64,000 nucleotides of DNA from Leidyana gryllorum EB-2025a (taxonomy: Eukaryota; Protista; Apicomplexa): contig JBLWGC010000230.1 in the NCBI GenBank assembly GCA_048772705.1, positions 1,116,001-1,180,000 of the forward strand, in the 5' to 3' direction. Of this stretch, positions 19,776-61,607 are shown in pieces. How positions within the stretch are numbered: the stretch's first letter is position 1; each line of letters starts with the position of its first letter. The notes under the pieces were generated by a model. That model saw nothing but the letters and a program-made list of their open reading frames with translations. It ran no database searches and was not told the DNA's origin. Both the position numbers and the translations under genes were made by a program.

Positions 19776-21974
19776 TTACAGCATACACGGTCGGGCTGGA
19801 ACGTCCTCCGGATTCTCTTTTAGGACCACGCGAGCGTCCAAAGCGATAATGCGATCCGGAAGAGCCAGCAGGGGGTTGATCTCGCACTCGACGACATGCT
19901 CGTACAAGTCACAAATCGCAACGGAGAACTTCTGGAGCGTGTCTTCCAGATCCTTCATCGGGCAGCCCTTGAACCGCTCGCCGTGCCCGGGAACCAGAGC
20001 TTTCGCGATCTTGGTCCGCTCAATTAGTCTCTTGCTCTCCTTCTCGTCGAGCGGAGGCACTGACATGGCAGCGTCCTTGAAGACTTCTACGAAGACACCG
20101 CCCGCGCCGAAGAGGACAATCGGGCCGAATTGTACATCGCTGCTGGACCCGGCGAGGAGCTCGACTCCTGACGCAATGTCAAGCATTGGTTGAACGGAGA
20201 CGCCCTGGAAATGATGGGCTCCCAACTTATCCACATTGGTCTTGATATCATTCCACGCTTTCCTCACGCCCTCATCGTCCTTAATGTTCAACTTGACCCC
20301 TCCGACATCAGATTTATGCGTGATTGTCTCGGAATTAAGTTTGATCACACACGGGAAGCGCACTTCGTGTGCAGCTTTAACCGCCTCGTCCGCCGATTGA
20401 CAGACAATCGATTCTGCCACGTCAATTCCATAGTGCTTTAACACAGCTTTAGATTCTGACTCTGTCAAACACTGTCGTTTCTCGTTAGCCGCTTTCTTGA
20501 TAATTTCCAAACTTGCTTCTTTGGCCTTGCCTGTCGCGACTTCAGCCTTGCCAGCCAAATTCTGAGCGTTAACCACTTGCTTGTAGATCAAACCCAAAGC
20601 TTGAGCGGCAATATCGGGCTGGGCAAAGCACGGAATACCGGCATCAATCAAAACACGACGGGAAGAAGCCACTTGATTCCCGCCCATCCACGCACATACC
20701 AAAGTGTGATGACCAAACTTCTCCTTGTTCTTCTGCACAGTCTCAACAATCGCCCGAGCGGTCGGTTCCGGCTCAGTCACGGACTGCGGAGAGAGGATAA
20801 CCAGCATAGACGCGCCTTCGGCCGCGTGGTCGCAGCAAGCCTGGACAGACTTGGCGTAAACATCGGCTTTCGCGTCTCCCAACACATCGATAGGGTTGGC
20901 GTGAGACCATGCAGCAGGCAGGAACCCATTCAGATCTTCGATCATCTTCTCGGACAGATCAACAATCTTAAGACCCGCAATGTCCGCAGCATCAGTACAC
21001 AACACACCGGGACCACCCGCATTTGTCACAATGTAAAGATCGTTGTTCTTAGGACGAGGTTGCATTGCACTGATCAAAGAGATGTTCTGGAGCTCATCAA
21101 TTGTATCCACCACCAAAACGCCAGCTCGCTGCATCACAGCGCAGAATCCATCATGAGATCCCGCCAAGGAACCCGTGTGAGAAACTGCTGCTGCCGCGGC
21201 TGCTGCGGTCTTTCCAGCCTTGATCACGACCAAAGGCTTCTTGTGAGCAACGGCACGAGCGGCCCGAACGAACTCGGCCGCGTTTCCAATAGTTTCCATA
21301 TACATAATAATACACGTCGTCGCCTCGTCATTCCCGAGGTACTCAATCAGATGAGACCACTCAACGTGAGCCATCGAACCAATCGACACAAAAGCGGAGA
21401 ACCCTTGGTGAATGGCTTGAGCCCAGTCCAAAACCGCAGTACACATAGCGCCGGATTGGGAGATAAAGGCCACCGTGCCTTGCTGAGCGCTGCCCGCCGC
21501 AAATGTTGCGTTCATCTGCCAGCGAGGAGCCATCACTCCCAAACAGTTCGGTCCCACAACGGCGATGCCTGCCTTCTTGGCTGTAGCCACCAACTCGTTC
21601 TCCAGTCTTAATCCCTCCTCGCCAACTTCCTTGAACCCGGCAGCAATGACGATCACCACCTTCACAGACTTGTTCTTCGTGCAATCCTCCACCACTGCAT
21701 TGCACTTCGCCGCCGGTGTGATGATGACAACCAACTCGCACTTCCCAGTGTCAATAGCTGACACTGATTTGTAGCACTTCACTCCAAGTACGGTTTCGCG
21801 TGTGGGGTTAACGGGATATACTTCGAACGGGTTGGGCTTCCCAGTAGATTGGTACCCATGCAAGCAATTTTCCAGCGTGGTCCTGCCAACGGAGCCAGCA
21901 CGCTCAGTTGCTCCAACGATTGCCACGCCGGTGGGCTTGAAGAGGGCACGCATATGCTCCTGAGTCACGGCCAT
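19776..21974 (-). CDS. Acetate--CoA ligase (ADP-forming), fused alpha-beta NDP-forming acyl-CoA synthetase
   Basis: CoA-binding GATERAGSVG, GPNCLG, SQSGA, phospho-His SHTGSLAG, TNAGGPG, NPIDVLGDA, ATP-grasp HKSDVGGV, EINPL, ALDAR; intronless. Confidence 0.93.
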   Translation of the reverse strand: MAVTQEHMRALFKPTGVAIVGATERAGSVGRTTLENCLHGYQSTGKPNPFEVYPVNPTRETVLGVKCYKSVSAIDTGKCELVVIITPAAKCNAVVEDCTKNKSVKVVIVIAAGFKEVGEEGLRLENELVATAKKAGIAVVGPNCLGVMAPRWQMNATFAAGSAQQGTVAFISQSGAMCTAVLDWAQAIHQGFSAFVSIGSMAHVEWSHLIEYLGNDEATTCIIMYMETIGNAAEFVRAARAVAHKKPLVVIKAGKTAAAAAAAVSHTGSLAGSHDGFCAVMQRAGVLVVDTIDELQNISLISAMQPRPKNNDLYIVTNAGGPGVLCTDAADIAGLKIVDLSEKMIEDLNGFLPAAWSHANPIDVLGDAKADVYAKSVQACCDHAAEGASMLVILSPQSVTEPEPTARAIVETVQKNKEKFGHHTLVCAWMGGNQVASSRRVLIDAGIPCFAQPDIAAQALGLIYKQVVNAQNLAGKAEVATGKAKEASLEIIKKAANEKRQCLTESESKAVLKHYGIDVAESIVCQSADEAVKAAHEVRFPCVIKLNSETITHKSDVGGVKLNIKDDEGVRKAWNDIKTNVDKLGAHHFQGVSVQPMLDIASGVELLAGSSSDVQFGPIVLFGAGGVFVEVFKDAAMSVPPLDEKESKRLIERTKIAKALVPGHGERFKGCPMKDLEDTLQKFSVAICDLYEHVVECEINPLLALPDRIIALDARVVLKENPEDVPARPCML

Positions 21975-22316
21975 CTTCACACCTTACAATTATGTATATA
22001 TCAGTAGCAGCTACAAGGAGACGAAAGCTGTGTGCCACACACGTTCGAAGGGAGACATCGTGTCTCAATGGACCTTGAGAGAAGAAGAGCGGTCGCCTTG
22101 GGCGTTCTCGTTGGACGTCTTGCAAATTGCCTCCGAAAGTGAGACATTCTAATGTATCGGCTCAAAACTAGACTAGACTGGACACCCGTGGGGCTTTGTC
22201 ACGCTGGCGTCAAGTGCTGCTGCGTCCACGTCCCATAAGTGCGCCTATTGTTTTCACGCGCGGCGGATCTAAGTTGGTGGCAGCAAAGCTCATCTTCTTC
22301 ATCCTGAGACGTCAAC

Positions 22317-38160: not shown

Positions 38161-38509
38161 GTCTAAAATGCCGGTGTCTCGTGTGTGTGTTGTGCCGGTG
38201 TGAGGCTCTTATGGTGTGGGTCTAGAAAGACTGTTGAGTAATTTGAGCGGAGGACGGCGTGTGGTATGGTTGATGCATTTGAAAGGACCATTACATTTTG
38301 ATCATATATGTTGATGGATTTGCTGTCCGGGAATAGTATCACTAAGGAAAATTGGCAGGGTCAACGAAAGGAGAGTTATCAGCTGATAGAACCGTTTTTC
38401 GGATGCTATGATTTGAGGTCCGCCCTGTCTTGTGTGCGCGATCTGGAGGCACTACATTTTCTAACTTTCACAAAAATATCATAATAAGGTCATTTTTTCC
38501 ACTGCTACC

Positions 38510-40078
38510 ATGACAACTGCAGGGGAGGCCGTGCTCTTCTTCGTGGAGCTGATCGTGATGCTTACATGCATCTGGTTGGGATCCCGAATGGGTGGACTTG
38601 GTATCGGTTTCTATGGTGGAGTAGGCGTTGCGTTATATGGGTTCGGATTCCAGATGGAGCCAGGAAACATCCCATTCGACGTCATATCGATCATTATGTC
38701 TGTTGTTTCTGCGATCGGCTGTATGCAGGTTGCTGGAGGAATGGACTATATGGTTCATCTGTGTTCAAAGGCATTGAGGAAGTATCCTCCTGGAATCACC
38801 TTTGTGGGTGCAGTCTTGGTATTTGCACTGACAGCTTTAGCTGGCACCGGTCACGTGAGTTATAGCTGTCTGCCGGTTATCGCGGAAGTGGCAAAGGAAA
38901 GCGGTATCCGTCCGAGTCGAGCTTTGGCTTCTGCCGTTGTCGGTTCCATGGTCGGTATCGTTGCTTCTCCTATATCAGCCGCTGTGGCATGGTTCTCCAA
39001 TGAGTTGGAAAGTCGGCCTCTGTACTCCAAGGCAGGATACGCCCAGATTCTAGCTGTGATGGTTCCTACTACATTTGTTGGGTTACTGGTCGGTTCTTTC
39101 GTGTCGAGCTTCCTGGGGAAACAGCTGTACAAGGACCCAGAGTTCCTTGCTCGAGTTGCCGACGGGCGCTGTGTATTGAAGAACCCTCTTCCGGCCGACG
39201 TCCAGGCCCAGGTTGACGCAATCAGAGCTGGGGCTTCAGCTGGTGCAATAGTGGCTGAGCTTGAAGCTGTGGAAGCGGCCGAGAATGACGCAGTCGACAA
39301 TGGCTTGTCGGAAAGAGAAGAGGATGGAGACCTTGAGAGACAAAGCATCAAGAGCTCCGGAAGTTCTGCTGACCAAATTGAAGCAGTCGTCGACGAGGAG
39401 AGGAAAGAACCAGAGAAAGAACATACCTTTAAGGCTAAGATGAGTGTATTGCTCTTCCTGGCGGGCATCATCATTGTCGTCATCTACTCATTGTGTCTGA
39501 GTGAGACCATCGTACCGGGATGGCCCGAGGAGAAGAAGAAGGTCGGCCGCAATGATGCTATTGTCTCGATGATGATTGCAACTGCTGCCATCATCGCTCA
39601 GTTCTGTAAAGTCAATATCCTTGACGTCTCGACATGCTCTACCTTCCGAGCTGGTATGAACGGGTCCCTCTGTATGCTCGGTGTGGCCTGGATGGGTAAC
39701 ACGTTTATCACCGCGCAACTTGACGTCATCAAGGAGGCTGCTGGCGGTATGTTCGAGAGTCAAGCTTGGCTGCTACCTCTCGTTCTATTCGTGGCCTCGT
39801 GTCTCCTATACTCTCAAGCTTCCACCGCCTCCGCCCTCTACCCCTTGGCCTTTGACCTCGAATTGAGCCCACTGACGGTTCTCGCGAGTTATCCAGCGGT
39901 GTGCGGTCTCTTCATCCTTCCCACTTATCCCACTGTCGTGGCCGCGTGCGCCATGGACGACACCGGCACTACCCGCGCCGGCAAGTGGGTCTTTAACCAC
40001 CCTTTCATTATCCCCGGTACTGTTTCTGTGGTAGTCGCAGTGGCCTTGTCGTTCGCCCTCGGCGCTGCGGTGGTGTAG
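38510..40078 (+). CDS. dcuA: Anaerobic C4-dicarboxylate transporter, DcuA/DcuB family (bacterial type)
   Basis: GGLGIG, PGNIPFDVISIIM, MQVAGGMDY, AGTGH, LPVIAEVAKE, ASPISAAV, LGVAWMG, LLYSQA, GLFILPTYPT, MDDTGTTR.GK.VFNHPF.IPG; intronless. Confidence 0.95.
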   Translation: MTTAGEAVLFFVELIVMLTCIWLGSRMGGLGIGFYGGVGVALYGFGFQMEPGNIPFDVISIIMSVVSAIGCMQVAGGMDYMVHLCSKALRKYPPGITFVGAVLVFALTALAGTGHVSYSCLPVIAEVAKESGIRPSRALASAVVGSMVGIVASPISAAVAWFSNELESRPLYSKAGYAQILAVMVPTTFVGLLVGSFVSSFLGKQLYKDPEFLARVADGRCVLKNPLPADVQAQVDAIRAGASAGAIVAELEAVEAAENDAVDNGLSEREEDGDLERQSIKSSGSSADQIEAVVDEERKEPEKEHTFKAKMSVLLFLAGIIIVVIYSLCLSETIVPGWPEEKKKVGRNDAIVSMMIATAAIIAQFCKVNILDVSTCSTFRAGMNGSLCMLGVAWMGNTFITAQLDVIKEAAGGMFESQAWLLPLVLFVASCLLYSQASTASALYPLAFDLELSPLTVLASYPAVCGLFILPTYPTVVAACAMDDTGTTRAGKWVFNHPFIIPGTVSVVVAVALSFALGAAVV

Positions 40079-42867
40079 AAAGGACTACACCTTTCCACGA
40101 CCACCACCCCGTGGACAGAGACCAGGAGCAGAAGAGCTCTGCTGCGCACCCTCCCTCCCACTCAATCACCCGAATCATACCGAACAACAACCCTCCCAGT
40201 CGAATGATCACGCTTGAAGCGAGACACACATATGCCGCCGTACAAATCGATCCTCCCACCTATAAGCCCGGAAAGTTCGTGGTCACTATACCACTTTTCC
40301 CGCCAATACACCCAAGACGGCATCTCATTTGTTCCTCAAGTGGTTCAATATGAAAAGACAATCGACTGGGATAAATCTGTTAAAGGCCCAACCCGCCAAT
40401 TCTTCCCAACGAGCACAACAACAATCCTTATACATCGCCCAAGGAAGTTTTTACCTCAATGTATCCGTATTGACTCATAATACATGTTCAACTACGCATA
40501 CGCACACACGCATCTACTCACTGCCACTGCTTGCTGCTGCTGCTATTTCTATTGCTCCAATACTAATGATCGCAGCTCGCGGGTAGTTGAGAAATATCGT
40601 TCTCAGTTCGGACACCCACCTATCGTCCGCAAGTGACTTTTTGCCTTTGGATGGTTTGAGTGATCATAAGTTGTCCTGCAGGACTCTCTCGCCCAGAGGA
40701 TCACTGCGCGCACGGTGTGAGTGAGCATTCTGAACACTGGTTCTTCTACCGAACGCAAAACAGAACTAATCTCCGATGAAGACAGATGGGATCTGTCTTA
40801 TCACTTCGCCGGTACAGTATCTTTCGTAAATGTTTCCCAAGCCTTCTGTGGCGACGATATTTTTTCCTCCCGTCTTCTGACGCTCAATCAGTCGGTGATA
40901 CGCGAGCCACTTGTTGCAAAAGGCAATTATCTAATCTTCGATCAAAAGTTGATGGCTCGCAAGCAACGCACCTCGATTTGGGTGGTCGAATTGTCGTGTT
41001 GCACCTGGTCAACACGTCTTGCCCGTACTTCACATCCTCCGTTTCCGAGGGCAACCCAATTTCGGGTTCGTCCCTCCGCACCCCGAATGTATTACAACAA
41101 TCAACGTCTCTTTCATGCATTCCTTCAGTATCGCCCCGCCATCAGCACGGCTTGGCTTTGAGCTATGGTCGGCTTAAGTAGAGTTTGTGATCCGAATTAC
41201 GTAAATCCGCCTCTTCTGGTCTAACAACCACAAAGAATACGGGAAACGGTACATCGACCCACTTGAAATTGAATGATACCGAGCTGAAACTTCAAGATAC
41301 ACACATAATGTTTACATACACAGGACCGAACACACCGACTGATTGATTTATTGACTATCGATTGTTCGACCATTGTAAATAAAGTGCCGCCGACATCCGG
41401 AAAGTGATCTGTGAGAATGATCCCGATCACCAACTCGTATATCCATACAGTACGGCCACAAAGGAAAAAGCGAAAACTATTTCGGGGTCCAAGACGCATA
41501 TGTGTGTGTGTTTGTATGTGCGCGGGAGTGAGTGATCGACACCCGCAGGAGTCCATTCGGCGCTCTTTCTCTATTGATTGCTGCCGTTTGGATGTGTTAA
41601 ATTCCAGAACTGGTCGGATTTCTCGCTGCATCCATCTCAACACCAGCATTTTCGAGTTGCCGATGAAAGTAAAATGGGAGGCCACATGGAAACCCGCCCA
41701 AACTGGAATATATCACCTTCTACGGAACTTTTCCCGCGGAGAATTATTCTATTATCAGTCAATCGCATAATAAGCTCAAAGTCTTGCTTCCCGTTGTTCG
41801 AGAAAGAAGAGACGGTGGTTATTCGCAGCTTCTCGTGAAGAACGTGGACGCCACTCTTAGCAAGTTTTGGCCTTTGGCCGTTGAATTTTTCCTGCAATTC
41901 TTTTCGTCAGTGTCGTTCTGTATTGCAGACACTTATCGAAAGTATCGCTGTACCTTTCAAATAGTGCCGCTAGCCACTGCTGCTTTGCCGAACGAATAGA
42001 CAGTGTCTCTCTCAGTCTCTCCACAAGAAATTCGTAAGAGAACATCCCCCTCCTCGCTTCTTGCAGCCAGTACTCCCTCCGGGTGGGCTTCTCGGGTTCC
42101 AGGCGGTGGTGTCTGTTGCGATCGTCTTCCGCAGGAGACATATCTTAAAGTGTATTCGGTTCTCCTCAAATAGCGTGTGACGAGTGTGGAGGGGGAAGTG
42201 TGCTGTGCTTATATATATGTATGATGAACAAATGTGTACTTATCATTTCGCTGCACCACCCCGATGCGATGCTCCGACACCAAAACCTATGGTGTCACAT
42301 CGTTCCCAGTCAGGGGGTGGATAGCGAGGGAAGGGTATTATTAGGGATTCCAAAGCAAAAGTGAATGCCATTCTGGCACTAAAGAAACTTGTGGTCATCA
42401 ACTCTTCTCGATGGTGGTGGTGCCTTCGGTCTGCCTCATATGACAGTGCCTTTAAGTGTGTAAGTGTGTGTGTGTCTGTGATGATCTTGAACAATGTCTT
42501 AGTCTTCTTCTAATGCTTGGCCGATCACAGAAGCTACCATTTCCTCATTGTGTCTTTCGGTCTCCCATACTGTTGATGGACCGCTCGTCTCGCGAACCAT
42601 CGCATCCAATTGAGCAATCACTCGACTGGCCACGCTGTTCTCATTACCGCCACCCCTGTGCGGCCCCATTGCTTCCTCTTCTCCCCAAAATCCAGCACTC
42701 CACAAACTCTGCCGTGTGACACTGGCAAGCAAAGGGCTAGCGGAGAAAACGCGAGCCGAGTACCTGCTCCATTTATAGAGAAAGCCGGCTCATGGGGGGA
42801 GACACACACGCAATCGCACACTCAGGACTTCCAGTTGGGCCCATCGATTCGGATCGGTGCACTTACT

Positions 42868-50164: not shown

Positions 50165-53100
50165 ATGGGCCAAGGTAAAAACAAAAATCCTGACTTGTGA
50201 CAGATATGAGGCGCCCCGAGCCGCCCCTACAGCTGGCTATGGCTGAGGTCTACGAAAGCCGAGTGTGGGTAGAACATCCTGAACTTGGCTTCGCTCCTGG
50301 TAGAATTGTTCGGGATGTCGCTTCTGAACAGGATGTTGTCGTCGAAGCACTTGACGGTACTCAGTACCGTGTGCCGCGCGGAACCTGCCCTCCCATCCAC
50401 CCTAATAGTCTCTTAGGAGTCCCTGACCTTCTGGAGCTGGGAGAGTTCTCGCTTGCGGCCCTCTTACACAATGTGCGTGTTCGTTACGAAAAAGGGGAGT
50501 ACTACTCCTCGATTGGACTTCCGATCTTGATCTCTGTGAACCCCTACAAGCCATTACCGCACCTGTACGATGCTGCCACTCGTAGACGGTACCAGTCGGC
50601 ACAGTTCTTGTTGCTTTCCCCTCCCAGTACTCATAGGACGCCCAAATCCAATTCGTCCGCCCCGTCTCCTAGGTCGCCTTTGCTCTTCGCCGACAATCCC
50701 CATCTCTTCGGGACCGCTCAAATGACTTATAGCTCCCTCATGCGCAATAATCAAGCCCAATCCATTGTAGTATCAGGCGAATCTGGAGCGGGCAAGACAG
50801 AGGCGACCAAGATTCTCTTGCGATACTTCTCCGAGTTAGATGATGGGAACGGTATGGCTACTCCGAAAGCCACAACTGTATCACCGTTCGTGCTGGTTGG
50901 CCCTAAACTGAGATCATCCGCGGGCTCGGCGGGCCGGTCTCCCCTGGCGCTCAGTAAGAGTCCGACATCCCAAGCGGCACCTCACGAGCACATTTCGATT
51001 GAACTGCACGCTTTGCGCTCGAACCCCATCCTGGAAGCTTTTGGCAACGCCAAGACGCTGCGCAACGACAATTCCAGCCGCTTCGGCAAATTCATTCAGA
51101 TCTTCTTCGATCTCAAGAACCGGCGACGCATCCGCAAAGCCAAGATCTCTCATTATCTGTTAGAAAAGTGCCGACTTGTCAGCTTGCACCCACAAGAGCG
51201 TAACTACCACGTTTTCTATGCACTGCTCTATGGTGGCCGACAGTCGTATTACGACAAATTGGAGCAATGGGACCTTCTCGATGACACGGTCTTCTGCAGA
51301 ATGTTGGGTGACGAACCACTGGGTAAGTGACCAAACACGTGTGCTAATGTCTCCCACAATGCTCTATGTGTGCAGATGTGTCGGAAGTTGAGGTCTTTGA
51401 CGAGCTGGTGTCCTGTATGCTGAGCGTTGGTTTTGACCAGGAGGAAGTGGATCAGGTTTTCGAACTGATTGCTGGGCTATTGCATCTCTCTACGCTGGAG
51501 TTCGAAGACGTCCATTCTTCAGCTGCGACTTACAATGCTGACGTTCCGCTGACGCGGCCTGTGGAGGGCAGAGTCGTTGAGCGGTGTGCACGTCTCTTCG
51601 GTTTGACCAAAGCTCCTCCCTACGGTCTTCGGGGCCCCAATTCTGCCCCGCGTAGTCCTCTTGAGAGCTTTTTGGACATTTTCTTGTGGGGAAGAGTGCG
51701 CGACGCAACTGGAAGTGGGAGTATAATCCCGACCAAACGAGATGCTAATGGCGCGCGGTATCTTCGCGATGCCATCATCAAAGAAGCCTATTCGCGCCTC
51801 TTCGAATGGCTTGTCCGCAAGATCAACCTCACACTGTGTAGTAAGGAGGAAGCCGAGCGTAGAGCTCCGCGGAAGAGCACGGCCCGTATAATGGAAGGAC
51901 TTAGAGAGACGCCCGGAATGAGGGGGGCAGCCGCGGCGGTCGGCGGTCTTTTGGGACGCGACATTGGAATGACGAGTTCCTCTCCCCCTATTGGACTGCT
52001 TGATATTTATGGTTTCGAAGTGTTCGAAGGACGGAACTCCTTTGAACAGTTATGTATCAATTACGCCAATGAAAAGTTGCAGCAGCACTTTAATCACCAC
52101 GTGCTCAGTTTGGAGCAGAAGACTTACAAGGAAGAAGGTATCCAATGGAATGACATAGCATTTGCTGACAACAAGCATATCATTGATGCTCTTGAGAACA
52201 AATTAGATGGCGTATTCAGTTTGCTGGACAGTGCGACACTCGCTCCTCAGGCTGATGAATCTTGGTTCTTAAGAGAACTCGAAGGGACTCGCCACCGCGA
52301 AGTGGTCGGTCTTCCGTCTCTCAAGTCTGGACGGCGACGGTGTATGGTGGTCCGTCACTATGCTGGAGATGTGGAATACACAGTCGATGCCTTTGTGGAG
52401 AAGAACAAAGATAAATTGAGCCATGATGTATCATATTACTTTGGAATGTGCAGTACTTCCCGCCTCCTGCAGGCCCTGTTTCCGCCCGTTAACACTCACT
52501 TCAGCACCCGTACCAATTCTCTGAAGGCGACTGTCAGTCTCGAGTTCAGAACTCAGCTGTCGGGGCTGCTGACTTCGTTGACATCCACAACACCCACCTA
52601 TGTTCGCTGTATTAAGCCCAATGGCCTTAAGCAACCCCATCTGTTTGATAGTCTCGATGTGCTTCGACAGCTAAAGTATGCTGGTCTGCTCGAATCTATC
52701 AGAATCCGTAACAGCGGGTTCGGTGTGAGATGCACTTTCGACGAGTTCTTGGACAAATATGCCCTCCTCGACCCAGTTGCACGAACAACATGGCGAAAGG
52801 CCCGCCCTGACCTCAGCTTGATGGACAAGGCCCGCTTGTCAACCCGGATTCTGGATTCGATACTGCCGCAATCCTCTGCCCCTGAGTCCACCACAGTCAG
52901 CGAAACCCACAGCAGCGCTAATCGGTCCTTGCGTAGCTCTTCACCCCAAGCGCGTGCATGGCAAACGGGTCAAACGCGGGTGTTTATGAAGGAAGAAGTC
53001 CAGATCCATCTCGAAAAATGCCGGACTCAGGTGATGAGCGACAATGCCATACGTATCCAAGCCCGTTGGCGGTCTCGCTACACTCGGCTTATTTATCTAC

Positions 53101-55499
53101 GCAGTCGGGAAGCCATAATCCGACTACAACGGAGCTGGCGTCACAGACGTGCGTTCAAGAGGATCATGGCTGTACTGCGATACAATCTGGCCTACATCAA
53201 AGTGAAGCGATGGCTGAGATGGATGATCTTGCGGAAGCGACGGCTGCGGGCCCGTCGTGGCGCCGTCCGGATCCAAAGGTTCTGGCGTCGCTGTCTGTTG
53301 GAGCGTCAGATGCGAGAGATGCTTTCGGCCGAGGGTGACGAGAGCGGCTTGGCCGATGAAGATATTGCCTCTGCGGGTCGCGATGAGGACAGACGTACGG
53401 ACACTAATGTCAACGGCAAGATGTCCGCTCACGGTGGAGGCAGAATCTCTACCAATGCTGGGGGAGGCTCCGCTCAGACACGGCGTTCACCGCGCTTCCA
53501 GGCCGAGGATGCAAGTTTGTCGCCTCGGGAGCGGCAAAACCGGTCCCGTGGGATCAGTCTGGAAGAGTCGAGTCTGGCGAGTGTGGCAGCCCGGCACCGC
53601 CACCGCAGTTGCGAACGTCGCAAGAGACGCAACACTATGGCCGAGGGCCGCCTGCGAAGACTGGACACGGCCACTCACGCCAAACCTCGTCGTGAACGCA
53701 ACCCCGAGCTGGATCTGTTCAACCGAGAGCGAGAGAATCAGCGCACGATAACTTCACTGAGGGCGCAGGTGAGTGATTTTTGCCTCTGGCGCTGGATCGT
53801 TGTCATATATCAATCGTAGAACGATGCACTCGCCTTGGCCCTGAAAGAGGCACAGAGAGATTTGGACCGCAAGAAGAAGGAGGTTGAGAAGCTGAATACA
53901 GATGTGAAACGTGAAGCTGACCTGGCAGATTGTCTGACCCGGATGCACAACGAAGCCGTCACCAGCAACGGGGTGCTACAAAACCGTTTGAGGAAAGCTC
54001 GACGCCAATTGGACGACTTGGCGAGGGTGTTGAACGATCTTTACGTAAGCGACAACCTGAATATCTCCCCAATTTAAATCGTCTTGGCTCGACAGACTAT
54101 CTCGTATCAAGACCGATGGCGCGCGGCTGCATCGTGTTGTATAGATGTGGCCAACTTTCTGAAAGTGGTGCGACTACACGCAACACGCATCAGAGAACAT
54201 CTTTATGAGATCGACAACATCTTCGAGGAGGCCGTCTATCCAGCCTATCCAGCAAGTGCATCCCGTGAGTTCGGCACGAGCGCTGTGCACACCTGTTCAG
54301 GCGGGGGGGGCGGTGCATACCCTGCGATGAGTCCTGAAGAATGTTACAGCGACGGAATGTATTGTGATGGCTATGCTCGCCCATGCGATCCCAGCATGGG
54401 CTGTGAGTACGATGCGCCTTACACCACAGAGTTTCATGATGCAGGCCCGATGGTGCCTCCCACTATGTATCCTCCTCCACAAGTGGGGTGGAATAGCACG
54501 ACCATTCGAGCTGGAAGCCCCATGTACCCACCAATGGATATGGTACAAGACTATGCCTATCAGAGAATGCAAAGACCCCATCATCGACACAGTCTCAGCC
54601 AGAGTCGTGGATACGATCCAGGTGTAAATCCCGCCGAAACCGAGTACTTGGGCCACGTAACTTCTCAGTGCGGCAGAATGCAAGCCGATATCCAAAGCAG
54701 CGGCGCAGGTAGCGCACGTCTTTGCCAACACGGCAGCGAGCTGCCGACGCACCGTGGATACTCCTCAACTTCTACTCGTTTCGGGCAGTACCAGGCCGAG
54801 CATCAGGGAGTCGTTCTGAGTGATGCGAGCCGGTATGGGATGGGCAGCCGAGCTTACCACCAAGCAACTCTGCCGCGATCCTCCAGCCGGGGCAGCAGAG
54901 AAGATCTCACTCCCAGCCAACACGACCGAGTACTCAGCTGCAATCTGCCTTCCATGGACCCGTCTCGAGCCTATCATCCGCAAGCGAGCTCTGATGAAGC
55001 CCCCAACCCGCACCACAGAGTCTACCAGACCGGAAGCGCCATGACAATGTCCAAACCTCCCAAATCTGCTCGCCAAACACCTTCCCACCGCGTCTCCAAC
55101 TCAATGAGACTGCCTCAACAACGATATGACGACAGCGCACAACCTACTTCGCGACTTCCTCCCTCCTCTCGAACCTCGCGTAAGTCGCTCCAGACTTCAC
55201 CGGGACGCAAATCCTCACCTCAAGGTCCCATCGTGGTCCAACCCCTCAAGGCCAACAGCCCGTTCAACTTCCTCGATGGCAAACTACTCGCAGGAGAGAA
55301 CTCGGCCACCAGCAGCACCATCTCTCACACCAAGCGCTGCATACAAAGGGGAGTTCACGGTAATATGTTCCTCTCCAATCTACCGTCCCCCATCGATCCT
55401 CCTCCTGACTTGGAGTATCTCAAGCAGGCACGCACCTCCAGCGATCCAGTCAGCTCTGACAGTAGTAATTCCGATGTAGGCCATCCCGATATTAAATAG
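50165..55499 (+). CDS. Myosin heavy chain (motor, IQ motifs, coiled coil, low-complexity tail); class undetermined
   Basis: ISVNPY, GESGAGKT, LEAFGNAKT..NDNSSRFGKF, LDIYGFE, FEQLCINYANE, RCIKPN; IQARWR/LQRSWR/IQRFWR; several short introns. Confidence 0.95.
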
Positions 55500-58323: not shown

Positions 58324-61300
58324 TCAGCGCAGCTCCTTCCCCGGAGCTGGTAGAGTGAAAAACTCACTCAGGTAGCAGCCGTTCGATCGGAGAGCATCGA
58401 ACAAATGCCTCAGTGTCATCATGTGAATTGAAGTAAGAAAGATGAGATGATAGAGTGATAATGAATCTGGTATTTTTTGTGCCCGGTTGTTCGGCGACAT
58501 AACGGCCACTCGGTCATACGACAGGTACGGGTACTTTAACATTACCCATCGCAGGGAACATGTCTACGAAAGCCTGCGAGTCTATGTCTGCAGTGCGTAA
58601 GAGTGCTTCTTCTTGCAGAGTGGTGGTAGTTGCTTTTGGATAAGGTGCATGGTCGTAGACCGTATGGCTTTGTGCGACTGGATCTGTGTGGATCTTGGGT
58701 GTTTGCCAGGTGCCAAAGCTCAAAGGATTAGGGAAGATTCCGGCGATGTAGCCTGCACACGGCCATGGCGCACTGCATTCGAGAGCAAAGGCTTTCTTCT
58801 CATCAAAGCTCATGAGATCTGTTGAGGCAGGTCCTGGACACGGTCCCTGCAGTCGGTGAATGCTAGAGGTTTGAGTGGAGAGCTGTTCATACCTGGTACC
58901 ATTTGGGTGGCCAACAAAGTTTGGATTGATACTCTGAAGCCCCTTTCTTAAATTTCCATTTCCAAGGACAAGGCTGAGACCAGTCCATCTCACAATGATC
59001 TACGCACGGCCATGGCAGGCCACATCGTCTACCATAGCTTCTACGGGTTTTAGCACTCCACCCGGCCACGCTGAATTCTGTTACACCACAAAGGTTGCCG
59101 AGATGGTCAGGAGGAGCGACGCATTTGGACTTTTGATACGTCCAATCCATTGGACATTTTGGTTTGAAATTCTCAATGCATTGACCATTACAGGGCCATT
59201 TGACCCCACATAGATCTTCCAGCTGCATTCTTCCACTAATATCAGTTGGTATGTTGAGTACTTTGAGATCTTTCCGTTTGATAGTTTTGTTCAATACCTC
59301 GTCCGCGGCTTCCACCATCGCATCTGCCATGTGGGAATGGGAGGTGGTGAGGTCGGGACATTTTGTTTTCCAGGATGTGGACGCACAGAGATGTCCTCCA
59401 ATCAGTTCTGCGGGGGTCTCAATGGGGAGTAGGACCCACTCAATTGGGCATGCGGCGGAGTAATTTGGTTCGCAAGAAGCAACGTAGCACGGCCACTCCT
59501 GACCACACATGGCGGCTGTACGCGACAAGTTGTTTCAAGAGAGGGGAGCTCAGTTCTTTGTCACTCACCGTGAGCTCGTCGTTGCCCGGGACTCATAGAT
59601 CCGAAATCGATCTTTCTCTCACATCCCTCCGGAAGCTCCATCCAGGGGGGTGCTACGCACATTCCATCAAGTTGGCGGAGCCACTCCTATGCGACAGTGT
59701 GATTGGGCCCGCTGTTCTCCCCCGCTCACACTCACCTCGGGGCAATACGGTCGAACAAAGTCTCTAACGCATGTCAGACAGGGCCAGCGGTATCCGCAGT
59801 TGATTTCTGCTTGCCTTTTATCTGCTTCTGACCAATCTGTAGTGTCCATAATGGGTGTGTCACACTTGGGCAGTGTTGGTGTCATGACTGAGGTGGGTAC
59901 ACAGAGTGTCCCAGCGAGAGTAGTATCTGTTCAGTCAAAGCTTTGTGTCGCATGTGAGACTGTTTATAACTTACCTAAGGGGCAGGGGGCGCTGTAATCT
60001 CTTTTGCAGCTGAGTGGTTTCAGATGATTGGATTCCGCTTCTTCCGCGAATATTCTCTCCATCCATTCAGCTTCCTGTTCAGTACGTTGATCTATTTCCT
60101 TGGGCAAACCCGATCCGATGAAGGGTAAGGCGCGCTTTAATTTCTGCTTGGCTTTGGTGGTGGAGCTGAACAGTCCTAACTCCTCCGGGGTTGGCTGTCC
60201 TTCAGAGCCTCGCCACTGTTGAGTCTTCTTGGAGCCAAACAAACCTCCAATAAAGCTGCTATCCAGCTCGAGAAAGGACTGTGGAAGGTGCAAACCCTCT
60301 GGTGGGAGAATAATCGCAGGATCGGGTACAATTGAACCGTTCTCGCTACTGACGGGACCATAAAGGTAGGGATGGGGCCCGCGATTGAGATGAGGCGTGA
60401 TGGGAGCTCGGTGGGGTGCCACTGGCTGAAGACTCTGGGGAGGGCTTGGGGCCTCGGGAGGTCGCGCGTTTGGTTGGGGTTTGGGGATGGGGGCACAGGG
60501 CCATGGGGCTTCGCACGCAGCTGCATACACCATCTTGACCGTCGAGTTGGGTGGCTTTGGGAGTAAACGGGAGCATTTGCCGGAATATGACGGCGGGGCA
60601 GCACAAAGGTTTCCAGACTCTGACCAGTTGAGAGGACATGCCTGGGTCAAGTTAGCGGGGCATTTTGAAACCACGTGTAGACCCACGACTGAGAGCCAAT
60701 TGGTTAGAGCATTAGCGGAGGCGATCAAGTTGAATTTCTCCGGGCTCGAAGCGGTCTTCCACTTTCCAGTGTCAATTGTGTTCAGTGGTCGGGTGGCAGC
60801 GTTGATCATACCATTGATTTGTCGAAGAAAGGAGTCTGAGCGATCTCGAAATCGATTGCGTCGACGATCGCAGTCGAATTCCAATTTGCATTCATTCGCT
60901 AGTTCACAGCGTCGGGCAGGGTTACGTAGCTCAGCAATTGAGATCTGGGGAGCACACGGAGTCATATCGTACAACGGAGCCACACATAAAGATCCTCGAA
61001 CTTCCCACTTCAACGGACAAGCTGTAATATCATTATCGTCACATCGGCAAGGCTCGGCCTCTGGCCATACGACTTGACAGATATCGGCAACAACTCTCCT
61101 TCCACCTTCAGTGGCCAGCTGGAGGTCAATTTGATCACCACATACTCCCCGATAGCTCGTGGGTGCCTTGCATTGTTTTTGTGTAAGTGTCTTCCATTGC
61201 GCTGGACAGGATTGACGCCATTCTTGCCGCCCTGGCCGTTGGCATGGCCACTTCAGATCACACTCAAAGGCGATTCGCAACTTCTGCGAGGGCGTCATGT

Positions 61301-61607
61301 TTTCAGCGGGCACAGTGTCTCCACATCCACTCGACTGCGCCCACTCCGACAGAGTGCAAGTGACATTGTCCAGCATAACGCCGCCCCGCGGACATGCTTC
61401 ATCCAGAGCATACGGACATACAAACTCCTCCGGATTCAATACGTCCAGGTAGTCAACGGCGTCCTTGACGGCCGCTCTCAGCTGATCTTCCATCGCCGTC
61501 CGACTGATACGCGGGTACCACCATCGATAACGACGAACCAATCGTGGCACATTGATGAACCCCCACACCTCGGGAAACAGGGCCAGTAGGGTTAGCAATA
61601 CCCACAT
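58324..61607 (-). CDS. CPW-WPC family protein (about nine repeats), secreted or surface
   Basis: Signal peptide; repeated CPxxW...C.AP..Y.G.C...C...WPC units across exons. Confidence 0.88.

Follow-up and report, generated by a model that had tools for sequence, protein, structure and literature searches.

The stretch of DNA analysed here (hereafter the window) comprises 64,000 nucleotides, 1.116-1.180 Mb, of contig C230 of the apicomplexan Leidyana gryllorum, and carries on its forward strand, at 38510..40078, an open reading frame (ORF) for a protein resembling DcuA, a bacterial carrier of C4-dicarboxylates. According to the ORF list, this coding sequence (CDS), which we call C230 Dcu, starts with ATG, spans 522 codons with no internal stop and is intronless. 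It thus corresponds to the intact 522-aa reading frame described in an initial annotation of this DNA, and the motifs quoted there are all present in the translation: PGNIPFDVISIIM at residues 51-63, LPVIAEVAKE at 121-130, GLFILPTYPT at 466-475 and MDDTGTTR at 482-489.

Family profiles, sequence identity and tree position agree on the nature of this gene. The Pfam model DcuA_DcuB (PF03605), proposed by the initial annotation as a check, matches C230 Dcu with 409 bits against a cut-off of 27, and the match extends over both halves of the profile (1-206 and 202-368). NCBIfam models PRK09412 (515 bits, cut-off 369), TIGR00770 Dcu (477 bits, cut-off 331) and PRK12489 (442 bits, above its cut-off) also recognise it. 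Using the sequence of E. coli K-12 DcuA from the annotated K-12 record (b4138) as a reference, we found 49.3% identity over 432 aligned positions, which bears out the collinearity with enterobacterial DcuA claimed earlier, whereas identity to DcuB is 33.7%. Every residue that is invariant or nearly invariant in a 52-sequence alignment of the family is kept in C230 Dcu, including D483, G491, P502, S153, P154, S156, A158, P471, G486, T488 and H497. Published Dcu proteins are 434-446 aa in length and have a short central loop (PMC10634366). With 522 aa C230 Dcu exceeds this length owing to a 74-aa insert in the central loop; as the membrane core is otherwise collinear, we regard the extra length as a variant that does not exclude membership. 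By sequence, C230 Dcu is clearly a DcuA-type C4-dicarboxylate transporter of the Dcu family (TC 2.A.13).

The membrane core and the insert are readily delimited on the forward strand. The N-terminal half (residues 13-222, 38546..39175) aligns with Pfam positions 1-206 and is mostly modelled with a predicted local distance difference test (pLDDT) score above 90, and the C-terminal half (residues 300-522, 39407..40075) is defined by the second profile match, at about positions 202-368, and by the AlphaFold2 model. Built on the 52-sequence alignment, that model has a mean pLDDT of 89.5 and a predicted template modelling (TM) score, pTM, of 0.87. DSSP assignments on it place SPISAA (residues 153-158, 38966..38983), whose residues S153, P154, S156 and A158 hardly vary, at the tip of a predicted hairpin in which a loop joins two helices (residues 135-151 and 157-167). 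LPTYPT (residues 470-475, 39917..39934), with its nearly invariant P471, occupies the tip of a second predicted hairpin, whose helices span residues 461-468 and 474-482, and is followed by the family signature MDDTGTTR (residues 482-489, 39953..39976), where D483 is invariant and G486 and T488 nearly so. By analogy with other elevator-type carriers, the two tips would form the substrate site. The PDB holds no sequence relative of C230 Dcu and no Dcu structure. A Foldseek search against it returned the elevator-type transporters INDY, NaDC1, NaS1 and VcINDY along with ArsB, Pho90, TRAP-M and YdaH/MtrF (AbgT), with TM scores of 0.41-0.53. The model thus has the predicted fold of the ion-transporter superfamily, with two repeats and two hairpins. 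Among these matches, proteins of the DASS/INDY group (SLC13, VcINDY) rank first (E 1e-4 to 1e-5) and share the predicted elevator architecture with two hairpins, but they belong to a different family, with 10-14% sequence identity. DASS proteins are the usual eukaryotic relatives within this superfamily, and most are Na+-coupled symporters rather than obligate exchangers.

The only large difference from E. coli DcuA is the acidic central-loop insert (residues 226-299, 39185..39406), delimited by alignment and pLDDT, which lies between the positions of E. coli DcuA residues 213 and 214 and contains 19 acidic against 6 basic residues. Low model confidence (pLDDT <50) is confined to residues 263-289 and 295-297, both within the insert. 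Since the first bacterial-type helix begins after as few as eight residues, C230 Dcu has no targeting presequence.

The gene is set among genes of a eukaryotic genome. GC content stays near 52% across the whole window and does not shift at C230 Dcu, and apicomplexan genes flank it on both sides in a contig of more than 1.2 Mb. Pfam searches of the long ORFs identified a myosin head (51366-53819), a CPW_WPC-domain protein (59964-61607, minus strand) and an intronless ADP-forming acetyl-CoA synthetase with ATP-grasp_5, Succ_CoA_lig and CoA_binding domains (19776-21980, minus strand), along with a pepsin-type aspartyl protease, the C-terminal part of a prolyl-tRNA synthetase (ProRS) and a protein combining ankyrin repeats with a 3'-5' exonuclease. 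The apicomplexan-like surroundings noted in the initial annotation are therefore borne out by the CPW_WPC, myosin and protease genes, and can be narrowed to a gregarine by the myosin, whose best named relative is that of Gregarina niphandrodes (44%), followed by dinoflagellate myosins (33-35%). Codon use in C230 Dcu follows that of its neighbours: GC at codon positions 1/2/3 is 0.58/0.45/0.58, within the range of 13 neighbouring ORFs, and its relative synonymous codon usage (RSCU) correlates with that of the pooled neighbours at 0.65, compared with 0.32-0.77 for the neighbours themselves.

C230 Dcu is not the only gene of its kind. Searching the genome (15.5 Mb in 237 contigs), we identified four Dcu-like genes, each on a contig of its own (C230, C205, C208 and C51), all intronless and encoding proteins of 504-530 aa. 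The claim of an embedded Dcu gene therefore stands, but its presentation as a single gene does not, as it is one of four paralogues that appear to stem from an old, shared acquisition. On its upstream side, the C205 gene has that for the spliceosomal protein PRP3 as its immediate neighbour, and TAFII55 and a class I/II aminotransferase are encoded on that side as well. A thumb domain of DNA polymerase epsilon is encoded upstream of the C51 gene; the ORFs flanking the C208 gene have no Pfam match. The C51 protein is the most divergent of the four, with 63 bits to the Pfam model and 17% identity to C230 Dcu, and it has an insert at the same site.

Evidence that the gene is maintained came from a public sequencing run (X1), whose short contigs are 86-90% identical to the C230 Dcu CDS and are assigned to a sister species. 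Of the CDS differences listed, 38 of 40 (148 in all) fall at codon position 3 (binomial p about 3e-16), which indicates purifying selection on a protein-coding gene in that species. The X1 contigs are unaligned across 39167-39363, in the region of the insert. Other contigs of this run are 90-93% identical to pieces of the upstream flank, and one of them (38386-38543, 13 differences in 158 positions) runs into the CDS. The 5' flank itself (38386..38509, forward strand), with about 92% conservation in the sister species, may include a 5' untranslated region or promoter.

Relatives were also found in other gregarines. When 5.8 billion proteins were searched by a word index, bacterial DcuA proteins came up at 42-55% identity, together with one further protein, P0001, of 499 aa, which is 47% identical over 98% of the length and has the central extra segment. 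P0001 is encoded on a 4-kb Logan contig (L001), where the last gene, two downstream, encodes the alveolin IMCp, a protein of the alveolate inner membrane complex. Four more copies emerged when 1.84 billion representatives were exhaustively searched with a profile and a further profile search, with names, was then run: P0121 of Gregarina sp. Poly1 (EukProt EP01054), P0392 of Protomagalhaensia sp. Gyna (also EukProt), and P0391 and P0122 from Logan. The last of these is located on an 8.3-kb contig (L019) between a gene for a WD40 beta-propeller protein and one for PRP3, which shares 33% identity with the PRP3 beside the C205 gene; the PRP3-Dcu adjacency is a trace of conserved linkage across very divergent species. 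Both EukProt sets are trophozoite transcriptomes from SmartSeq2 or TruSeq mRNA libraries (Salomaki et al. 2021, PMC8051059), and the P0121 and P0392 orthologues are therefore transcribed in their species. The gregarine relatives are 38-49% identical to C230 Dcu, and both hairpin motifs are kept in the C230, C205, P0001 and cockroach-gregarine copies. Between 54 and 138 residues occupy the insert site in all nine eukaryotic copies, C51 included, and this site is empty in E. coli DcuA and three other aligned DcuA-type bacterial sequences.

Could a gut-bacterial ORF have been stitched into a parasite contig, by contamination or a chimeric join? The nearest database proteins, at 42-50% identity, are bacterial and the ORF is intronless, which speaks for this explanation, but bacterial proteins are at best about 50% identical to C230 Dcu, and its GC at third positions and RSCU match those of host genes. 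Moreover, eukaryotic genes lie on both sides within a contig of such length, the four paralogues reside at four loci and all carry the eukaryote-type disordered insert, and orthologues occur in gregarine transcriptomes and beside PRP3 and IMCp genes. Finally, the sister species differs mostly at third positions, and its short contigs span the upstream flank into the CDS. We therefore give contamination next to no chance. Composition, eukaryotic flanks, paralogues, gregarine orthologues and sister-species differences together confirm that C230 Dcu genuinely belongs to the nuclear genome of an apicomplexan of the gregarine group.

To place these proteins, we inferred a careful maximum-likelihood tree of 45 rows and 435 columns under LG+C20+F+G4 with posterior mean site frequencies (PMSF), rooted on the DcuB-type rows. 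The C51 protein was left out because its branch length of 10 makes it impossible to place; its position in earlier trees was either the midpoint root or a polytomy next to the eukaryotic clade. The remaining eight eukaryotic copies form one clade (support 99/99) found in 200/200 bootstrap trees. This clade is nested, with short internal branches, inside a DcuA-type clade (97/96) that includes E. coli DcuA, other Proteobacteria, Thermodesulfobacteriota and Actinomycetota, and that is separate from the DcuB-type clade (100/99). The cockroach gregarines (P0121, P0391 and P0392) make up one subgroup (100/100), and a second (91/77) joins C230, C205, C208, P0001 and P0122, with C230 and C205 as a pair (94/58). 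An earlier quick tree of 96 rows had grouped six eukaryotic copies inside the DcuA-type clade with a Shimodaira-Hasegawa-like approximate likelihood ratio test (SH-aLRT) value of 90, and in a careful tree of 43 rows, before P0391 and P0392 were added, the eukaryotic group received 68/95. The horizontal transfer proposed in the initial annotation is supported by this nesting, by the host codon use of the gene, by its eukaryotic neighbours and by the expressed orthologues of other gregarines. As the donor, it suggested gut Proteobacteria: the source appears to be a bacterium with a DcuA-type gene, but under the modest bacterial sampling of these trees the sister link of the eukaryotic clade to Erwiniaceae/Cedecea (Enterobacterales) is weakly supported (81/57), which makes gut Proteobacteria no more than a possible donor.

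Whether DcuA genes moved from gut bacteria into different gregarines several times, with the inserts arising convergently, was considered in light of these trees. The gregarine relatives are about as close to C230 Dcu (38-49%) as E. coli DcuA is (49%), and support for the clade was 68/95 with fewer gregarine rows. In addition, a bacterial protein, P0132, also has a central-loop insert. P0132 is bacterial because its gene sits between those for a LysR regulator and an M20 peptidase, and we therefore rejected the insert alone as a marker of eukaryotic copies. Against repeated transfer, the clade with eight eukaryotic rows is recovered at 99/99 and in all bootstrap trees, PRP3 adjoins Dcu in two divergent species, and the insert site is identical in 9/9 eukaryotic copies. 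We thus judge independent transfers to be quite improbable.

Vertical descent from an ancient eukaryotic gene, with loss in nearly all lineages, would also account for a Dcu old enough to be common to divergent gregarines. A broad presence of Dcu across eukaryotes, which the initial annotation had raised as an observation that would tell against transfer, was not what we found: among the listed best hits of two very large searches, the eukaryote-type copies come only from gregarines or from alveolate/eukaryote contigs. With the clade nested among bacterial DcuA proteins on short internal branches, and no report of Dcu in a eukaryote found in the literature, vertical descent is highly improbable. 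Instead, the single clade, the common insert site, the PRP3 linkage and the IMCp gene near P0001 point to one old acquisition. The sequences support a single horizontal transfer from a DcuA-type bacterium to a gregarine ancestor, and the acquisition appears to be old, being common to at least two divergent gregarine lineages. The events after the transfer are shown by the data above: adoption of host codon use, gain of a disordered acidic central-loop insert, duplication to four genes and purifying selection.

We then considered what such a carrier might do in this parasite. The genome contains an intronless gene for a soluble fumarate reductase of 620 aa (C194:53044-54906; L010:1303-3165) that matches TIGR01813 with 317 bits and has yeast Osm1 (5GLG, 249 bits) as its best PDB match. 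It also contains an intronless class II (FumC-type) fumarase gene on contig C185 (L017:1129-2526, minus strand; 653 bits), SdhA and one gene of the lactate/malate dehydrogenase (LDH/MDH) family. Apicomplexans usually have class I fumarase, and the origin of this FumC may deserve a separate tree. Cytochrome c1 (PF02167) had no match in the whole genome, and the beta subunit of F1-ATPase had only a weak one (94 bits, cut-off 463), consistent with a gregarine lacking respiratory complexes III-V. Loss of these complexes has been described for gut eugregarines (PMC8051059). In bacteria, L-aspartate enters through DcuA against succinate or fumarate leaving the cell, and DcuB trades L-malate or fumarate for succinate (PMC10634366).

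In the mechanism that we propose, the carrier would sit in the surface membrane of the parasite and work by elevator-type exchange as in bacteria, with its substrate site at the tips of the two hairpins. External L-aspartate, L-malate or fumarate from the host gut would be swapped for internal succinate or fumarate. Inside the cell, a cytosolic branch from malate through fumarate to succinate, composed of the MDH/LDH-family enzyme, the class II fumarase and the Osm1-like fumarate reductase, would re-oxidise reducing equivalents in a parasite without complexes III and V. The most economical reading, by analogy with the bacterial carriers, is that the gregarine proteins exchange a C4-dicarboxylate of the gut for succinate produced by fumarate reduction. 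Dcu probably lets gregarines that have no respiratory chain take up aspartate, malate or fumarate in exchange for succinate, and the roles that the initial annotation gives for Dcu carriers, fumarate respiration and aspartate uptake, may apply to the parasite too.

A location in an organellar rather than the surface membrane is another option. SdhA is retained, so that organellar interconversion of fumarate and succinate is possible, and polytopic inner-membrane proteins often lack presequences. On the other hand, C230 Dcu has only 8 residues before its first bacterial-type helix and nothing resembling a presequence, the fumarate reductase identified belongs to the soluble Osm1 type, and organellar dicarboxylate transport in eukaryotes is normally the task of proteins of the mitochondrial carrier family. 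These points are not decisive, and we regard an organellar site as unlikely.

Taken jointly, the evidence makes it probable that C230 Dcu is a native gregarine gene of the DcuA type, descended from a single bacterial acquisition, whose product acts as a surface exchanger feeding a succinate branch. Several observations weigh against parts of this reading. No aspartase was found in the genome, where the sole strong Lyase_1 gene scores higher as a class II fumarase (653 bits) than against the model of the aspartase subfamily (488 bits), so the logic of the E. coli DcuA-AspA pair is not directly transferable. PEPCK_ATP (PF01293), the ATP-dependent phosphoenolpyruvate carboxykinase, likewise had no match in the whole genome, and substrate preference is not readable from sequence. 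The second hairpin motif, LPTYPT, is lost in the C208 and C51 proteins, which, to judge from their degenerate hairpin motifs, may do something else. In the sequencing-run search, X1 was the sole run with related sequence (5% of sampled words), and it is of uncertain type and represented by contigs only. Lastly, no Dcu of G. niphandrodes was among the best 120 matches of the profile search, which suggests that it is absent from the annotated proteins of this species, and the distribution of Dcu within gregarines may be patchy. A more ambitious version can be imagined, in which the four Dcu proteins make up the surface exchange system of eugregarines without a respiratory chain, bringing in aspartate, malate or fumarate from the host gut and releasing succinate, fumarate reduction by a soluble fumarate reductase is their main electron sink, the one transfer was key to life in the hypoxic gut, and the diverged paralogues (C208 and C51) have taken on new substrates or membranes; this is conceivable, but we would lean against it.

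Compared with E. coli DcuA, C230 Dcu is collinear end to end, shares SPISAA, LPTYPT and MDDTGTTR and falls in the same subfamily clade. It differs in being encoded by a eukaryote, in its 74-aa disordered acidic insert (522 versus 433 aa), in having no aspA partner found in the genome and in being one of four diverged paralogues. E. coli DcuB and Actinobacillus DcuE, which serve fumarate respiration as antiporters of L-malate or fumarate against succinate, belong to the same family and share the predicted fold. With a fumarase and a fumarate reductase and no aspartase found, the genome context is nearer to the physiological partners of DcuB than to those of DcuA, whereas the protein itself is unlike DcuB in identity (33.7%) and in clade. 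Transfers from prokaryotes to gregarines and other apicomplexans have been published for ADP-forming acetyl-CoA synthetase, a proteobacterial malic enzyme and malate:quinone oxidoreductase (MQO) (PMC8051059). Like these, Dcu is a bacterial metabolic gene fixed in gut apicomplexans with a reduced mitochondrion, and the first of them also has a copy in this window, the acetyl-CoA synthetase gene mentioned above. Unlike these soluble enzymes, Dcu is a polytopic membrane carrier.

Our literature search found no paper linking Dcu carriers to any eukaryote, and dicarboxylate carriers go unmentioned in the gregarine transcriptome study (PMC8051059; 0 occurrences of 'dicarboxylate'), which is silent on C4-acid uptake and succinate disposal. 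Neither the Dcu family and its mechanism nor the occurrence of bacterial genes for metabolism in anaerobic protists of the gut is new; the eukaryote-specific loop insert and the four-fold expansion are features of the gregarine system itself. The literature searched treats Dcu carriers as purely bacterial proteins, with roles in fumarate respiration and in the use of aspartate in the gut. With a Dcu family that is under selection, expressed and expanded in gregarines, a membrane carrier joins the few bacterial genes known to have reshaped the energy metabolism of apicomplexans, and the family offers a testable candidate for C4-acid uptake and succinate disposal in gut gregarines without complexes III-V. 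It also provides a clean case of a bacterial polytopic transporter adapting to a eukaryotic cell, with a disordered acidic insert, divergence of paralogues and no targeting extension. Since gregarines are of no medical concern as pathogens, its value is evolutionary and physiological.

Further scans returned Dcu sequences of other kinds. A scan of metagenome contigs yielded 36 loci at 36-54% best-segment identity, with no evident eukaryote-type copy among them, and a scan of genome contigs gave almost exclusively matches from Actinomycetota. This excess arises because the peptide patterns used (GVAWM etc.) favour Actinomycetota, to which the tree has no sister link. A Serratia entomophila protein of 512 aa (P0002) was rejected as a bacterial bearer of the insert, its extra length being an internal duplication of its own sequence. 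On a contig with 41% GC from a JGI metagenome (L020, 3300042655), we found a protein of 519 aa (P0192) that falls in the DcuB-side clade, has a central insert of low complexity rich in Gly, Ala, Ser and Thr, and is encoded beside a gene with no Pfam match; it may represent a further eukaryotic Dcu of separate origin or an unusual bacterial protein.

Some minor observations concern the loci themselves. The gene-poor stretch 3' of C230 Dcu (40079-42867) is single-copy in the genome, and Rfam gave no match at 36-45 kb of the window. Two X1 contigs match this stretch without a difference (at 41256-41447 and 41768-41948), whereas all other X1 contigs differ by 7-14%; perhaps X1 includes a little DNA of the window's own species alongside the sister species, or perhaps conservation of these pieces is exceptionally high. 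On contig C51, an ORF with a clear domain of the mechanosensitive channel MscL (PF01741, 101 bits; L008:786-1436, plus strand), of 216 aa with a Cys-rich low-complexity tail, ends 31 bp ahead of the Dcu ORF (L008:1468-2982) on the same strand, so that two bacterial-type membrane proteins adjoin in a eukaryotic contig. A few kb downstream of the C205 Dcu gene, at about 157000-162500 of that contig (L084:4001-9533, minus strand), a two-gene unit consisting of a 353-aa ORF without a Pfam match and a 257-258-aa F-box ORF is repeated three times in tandem.

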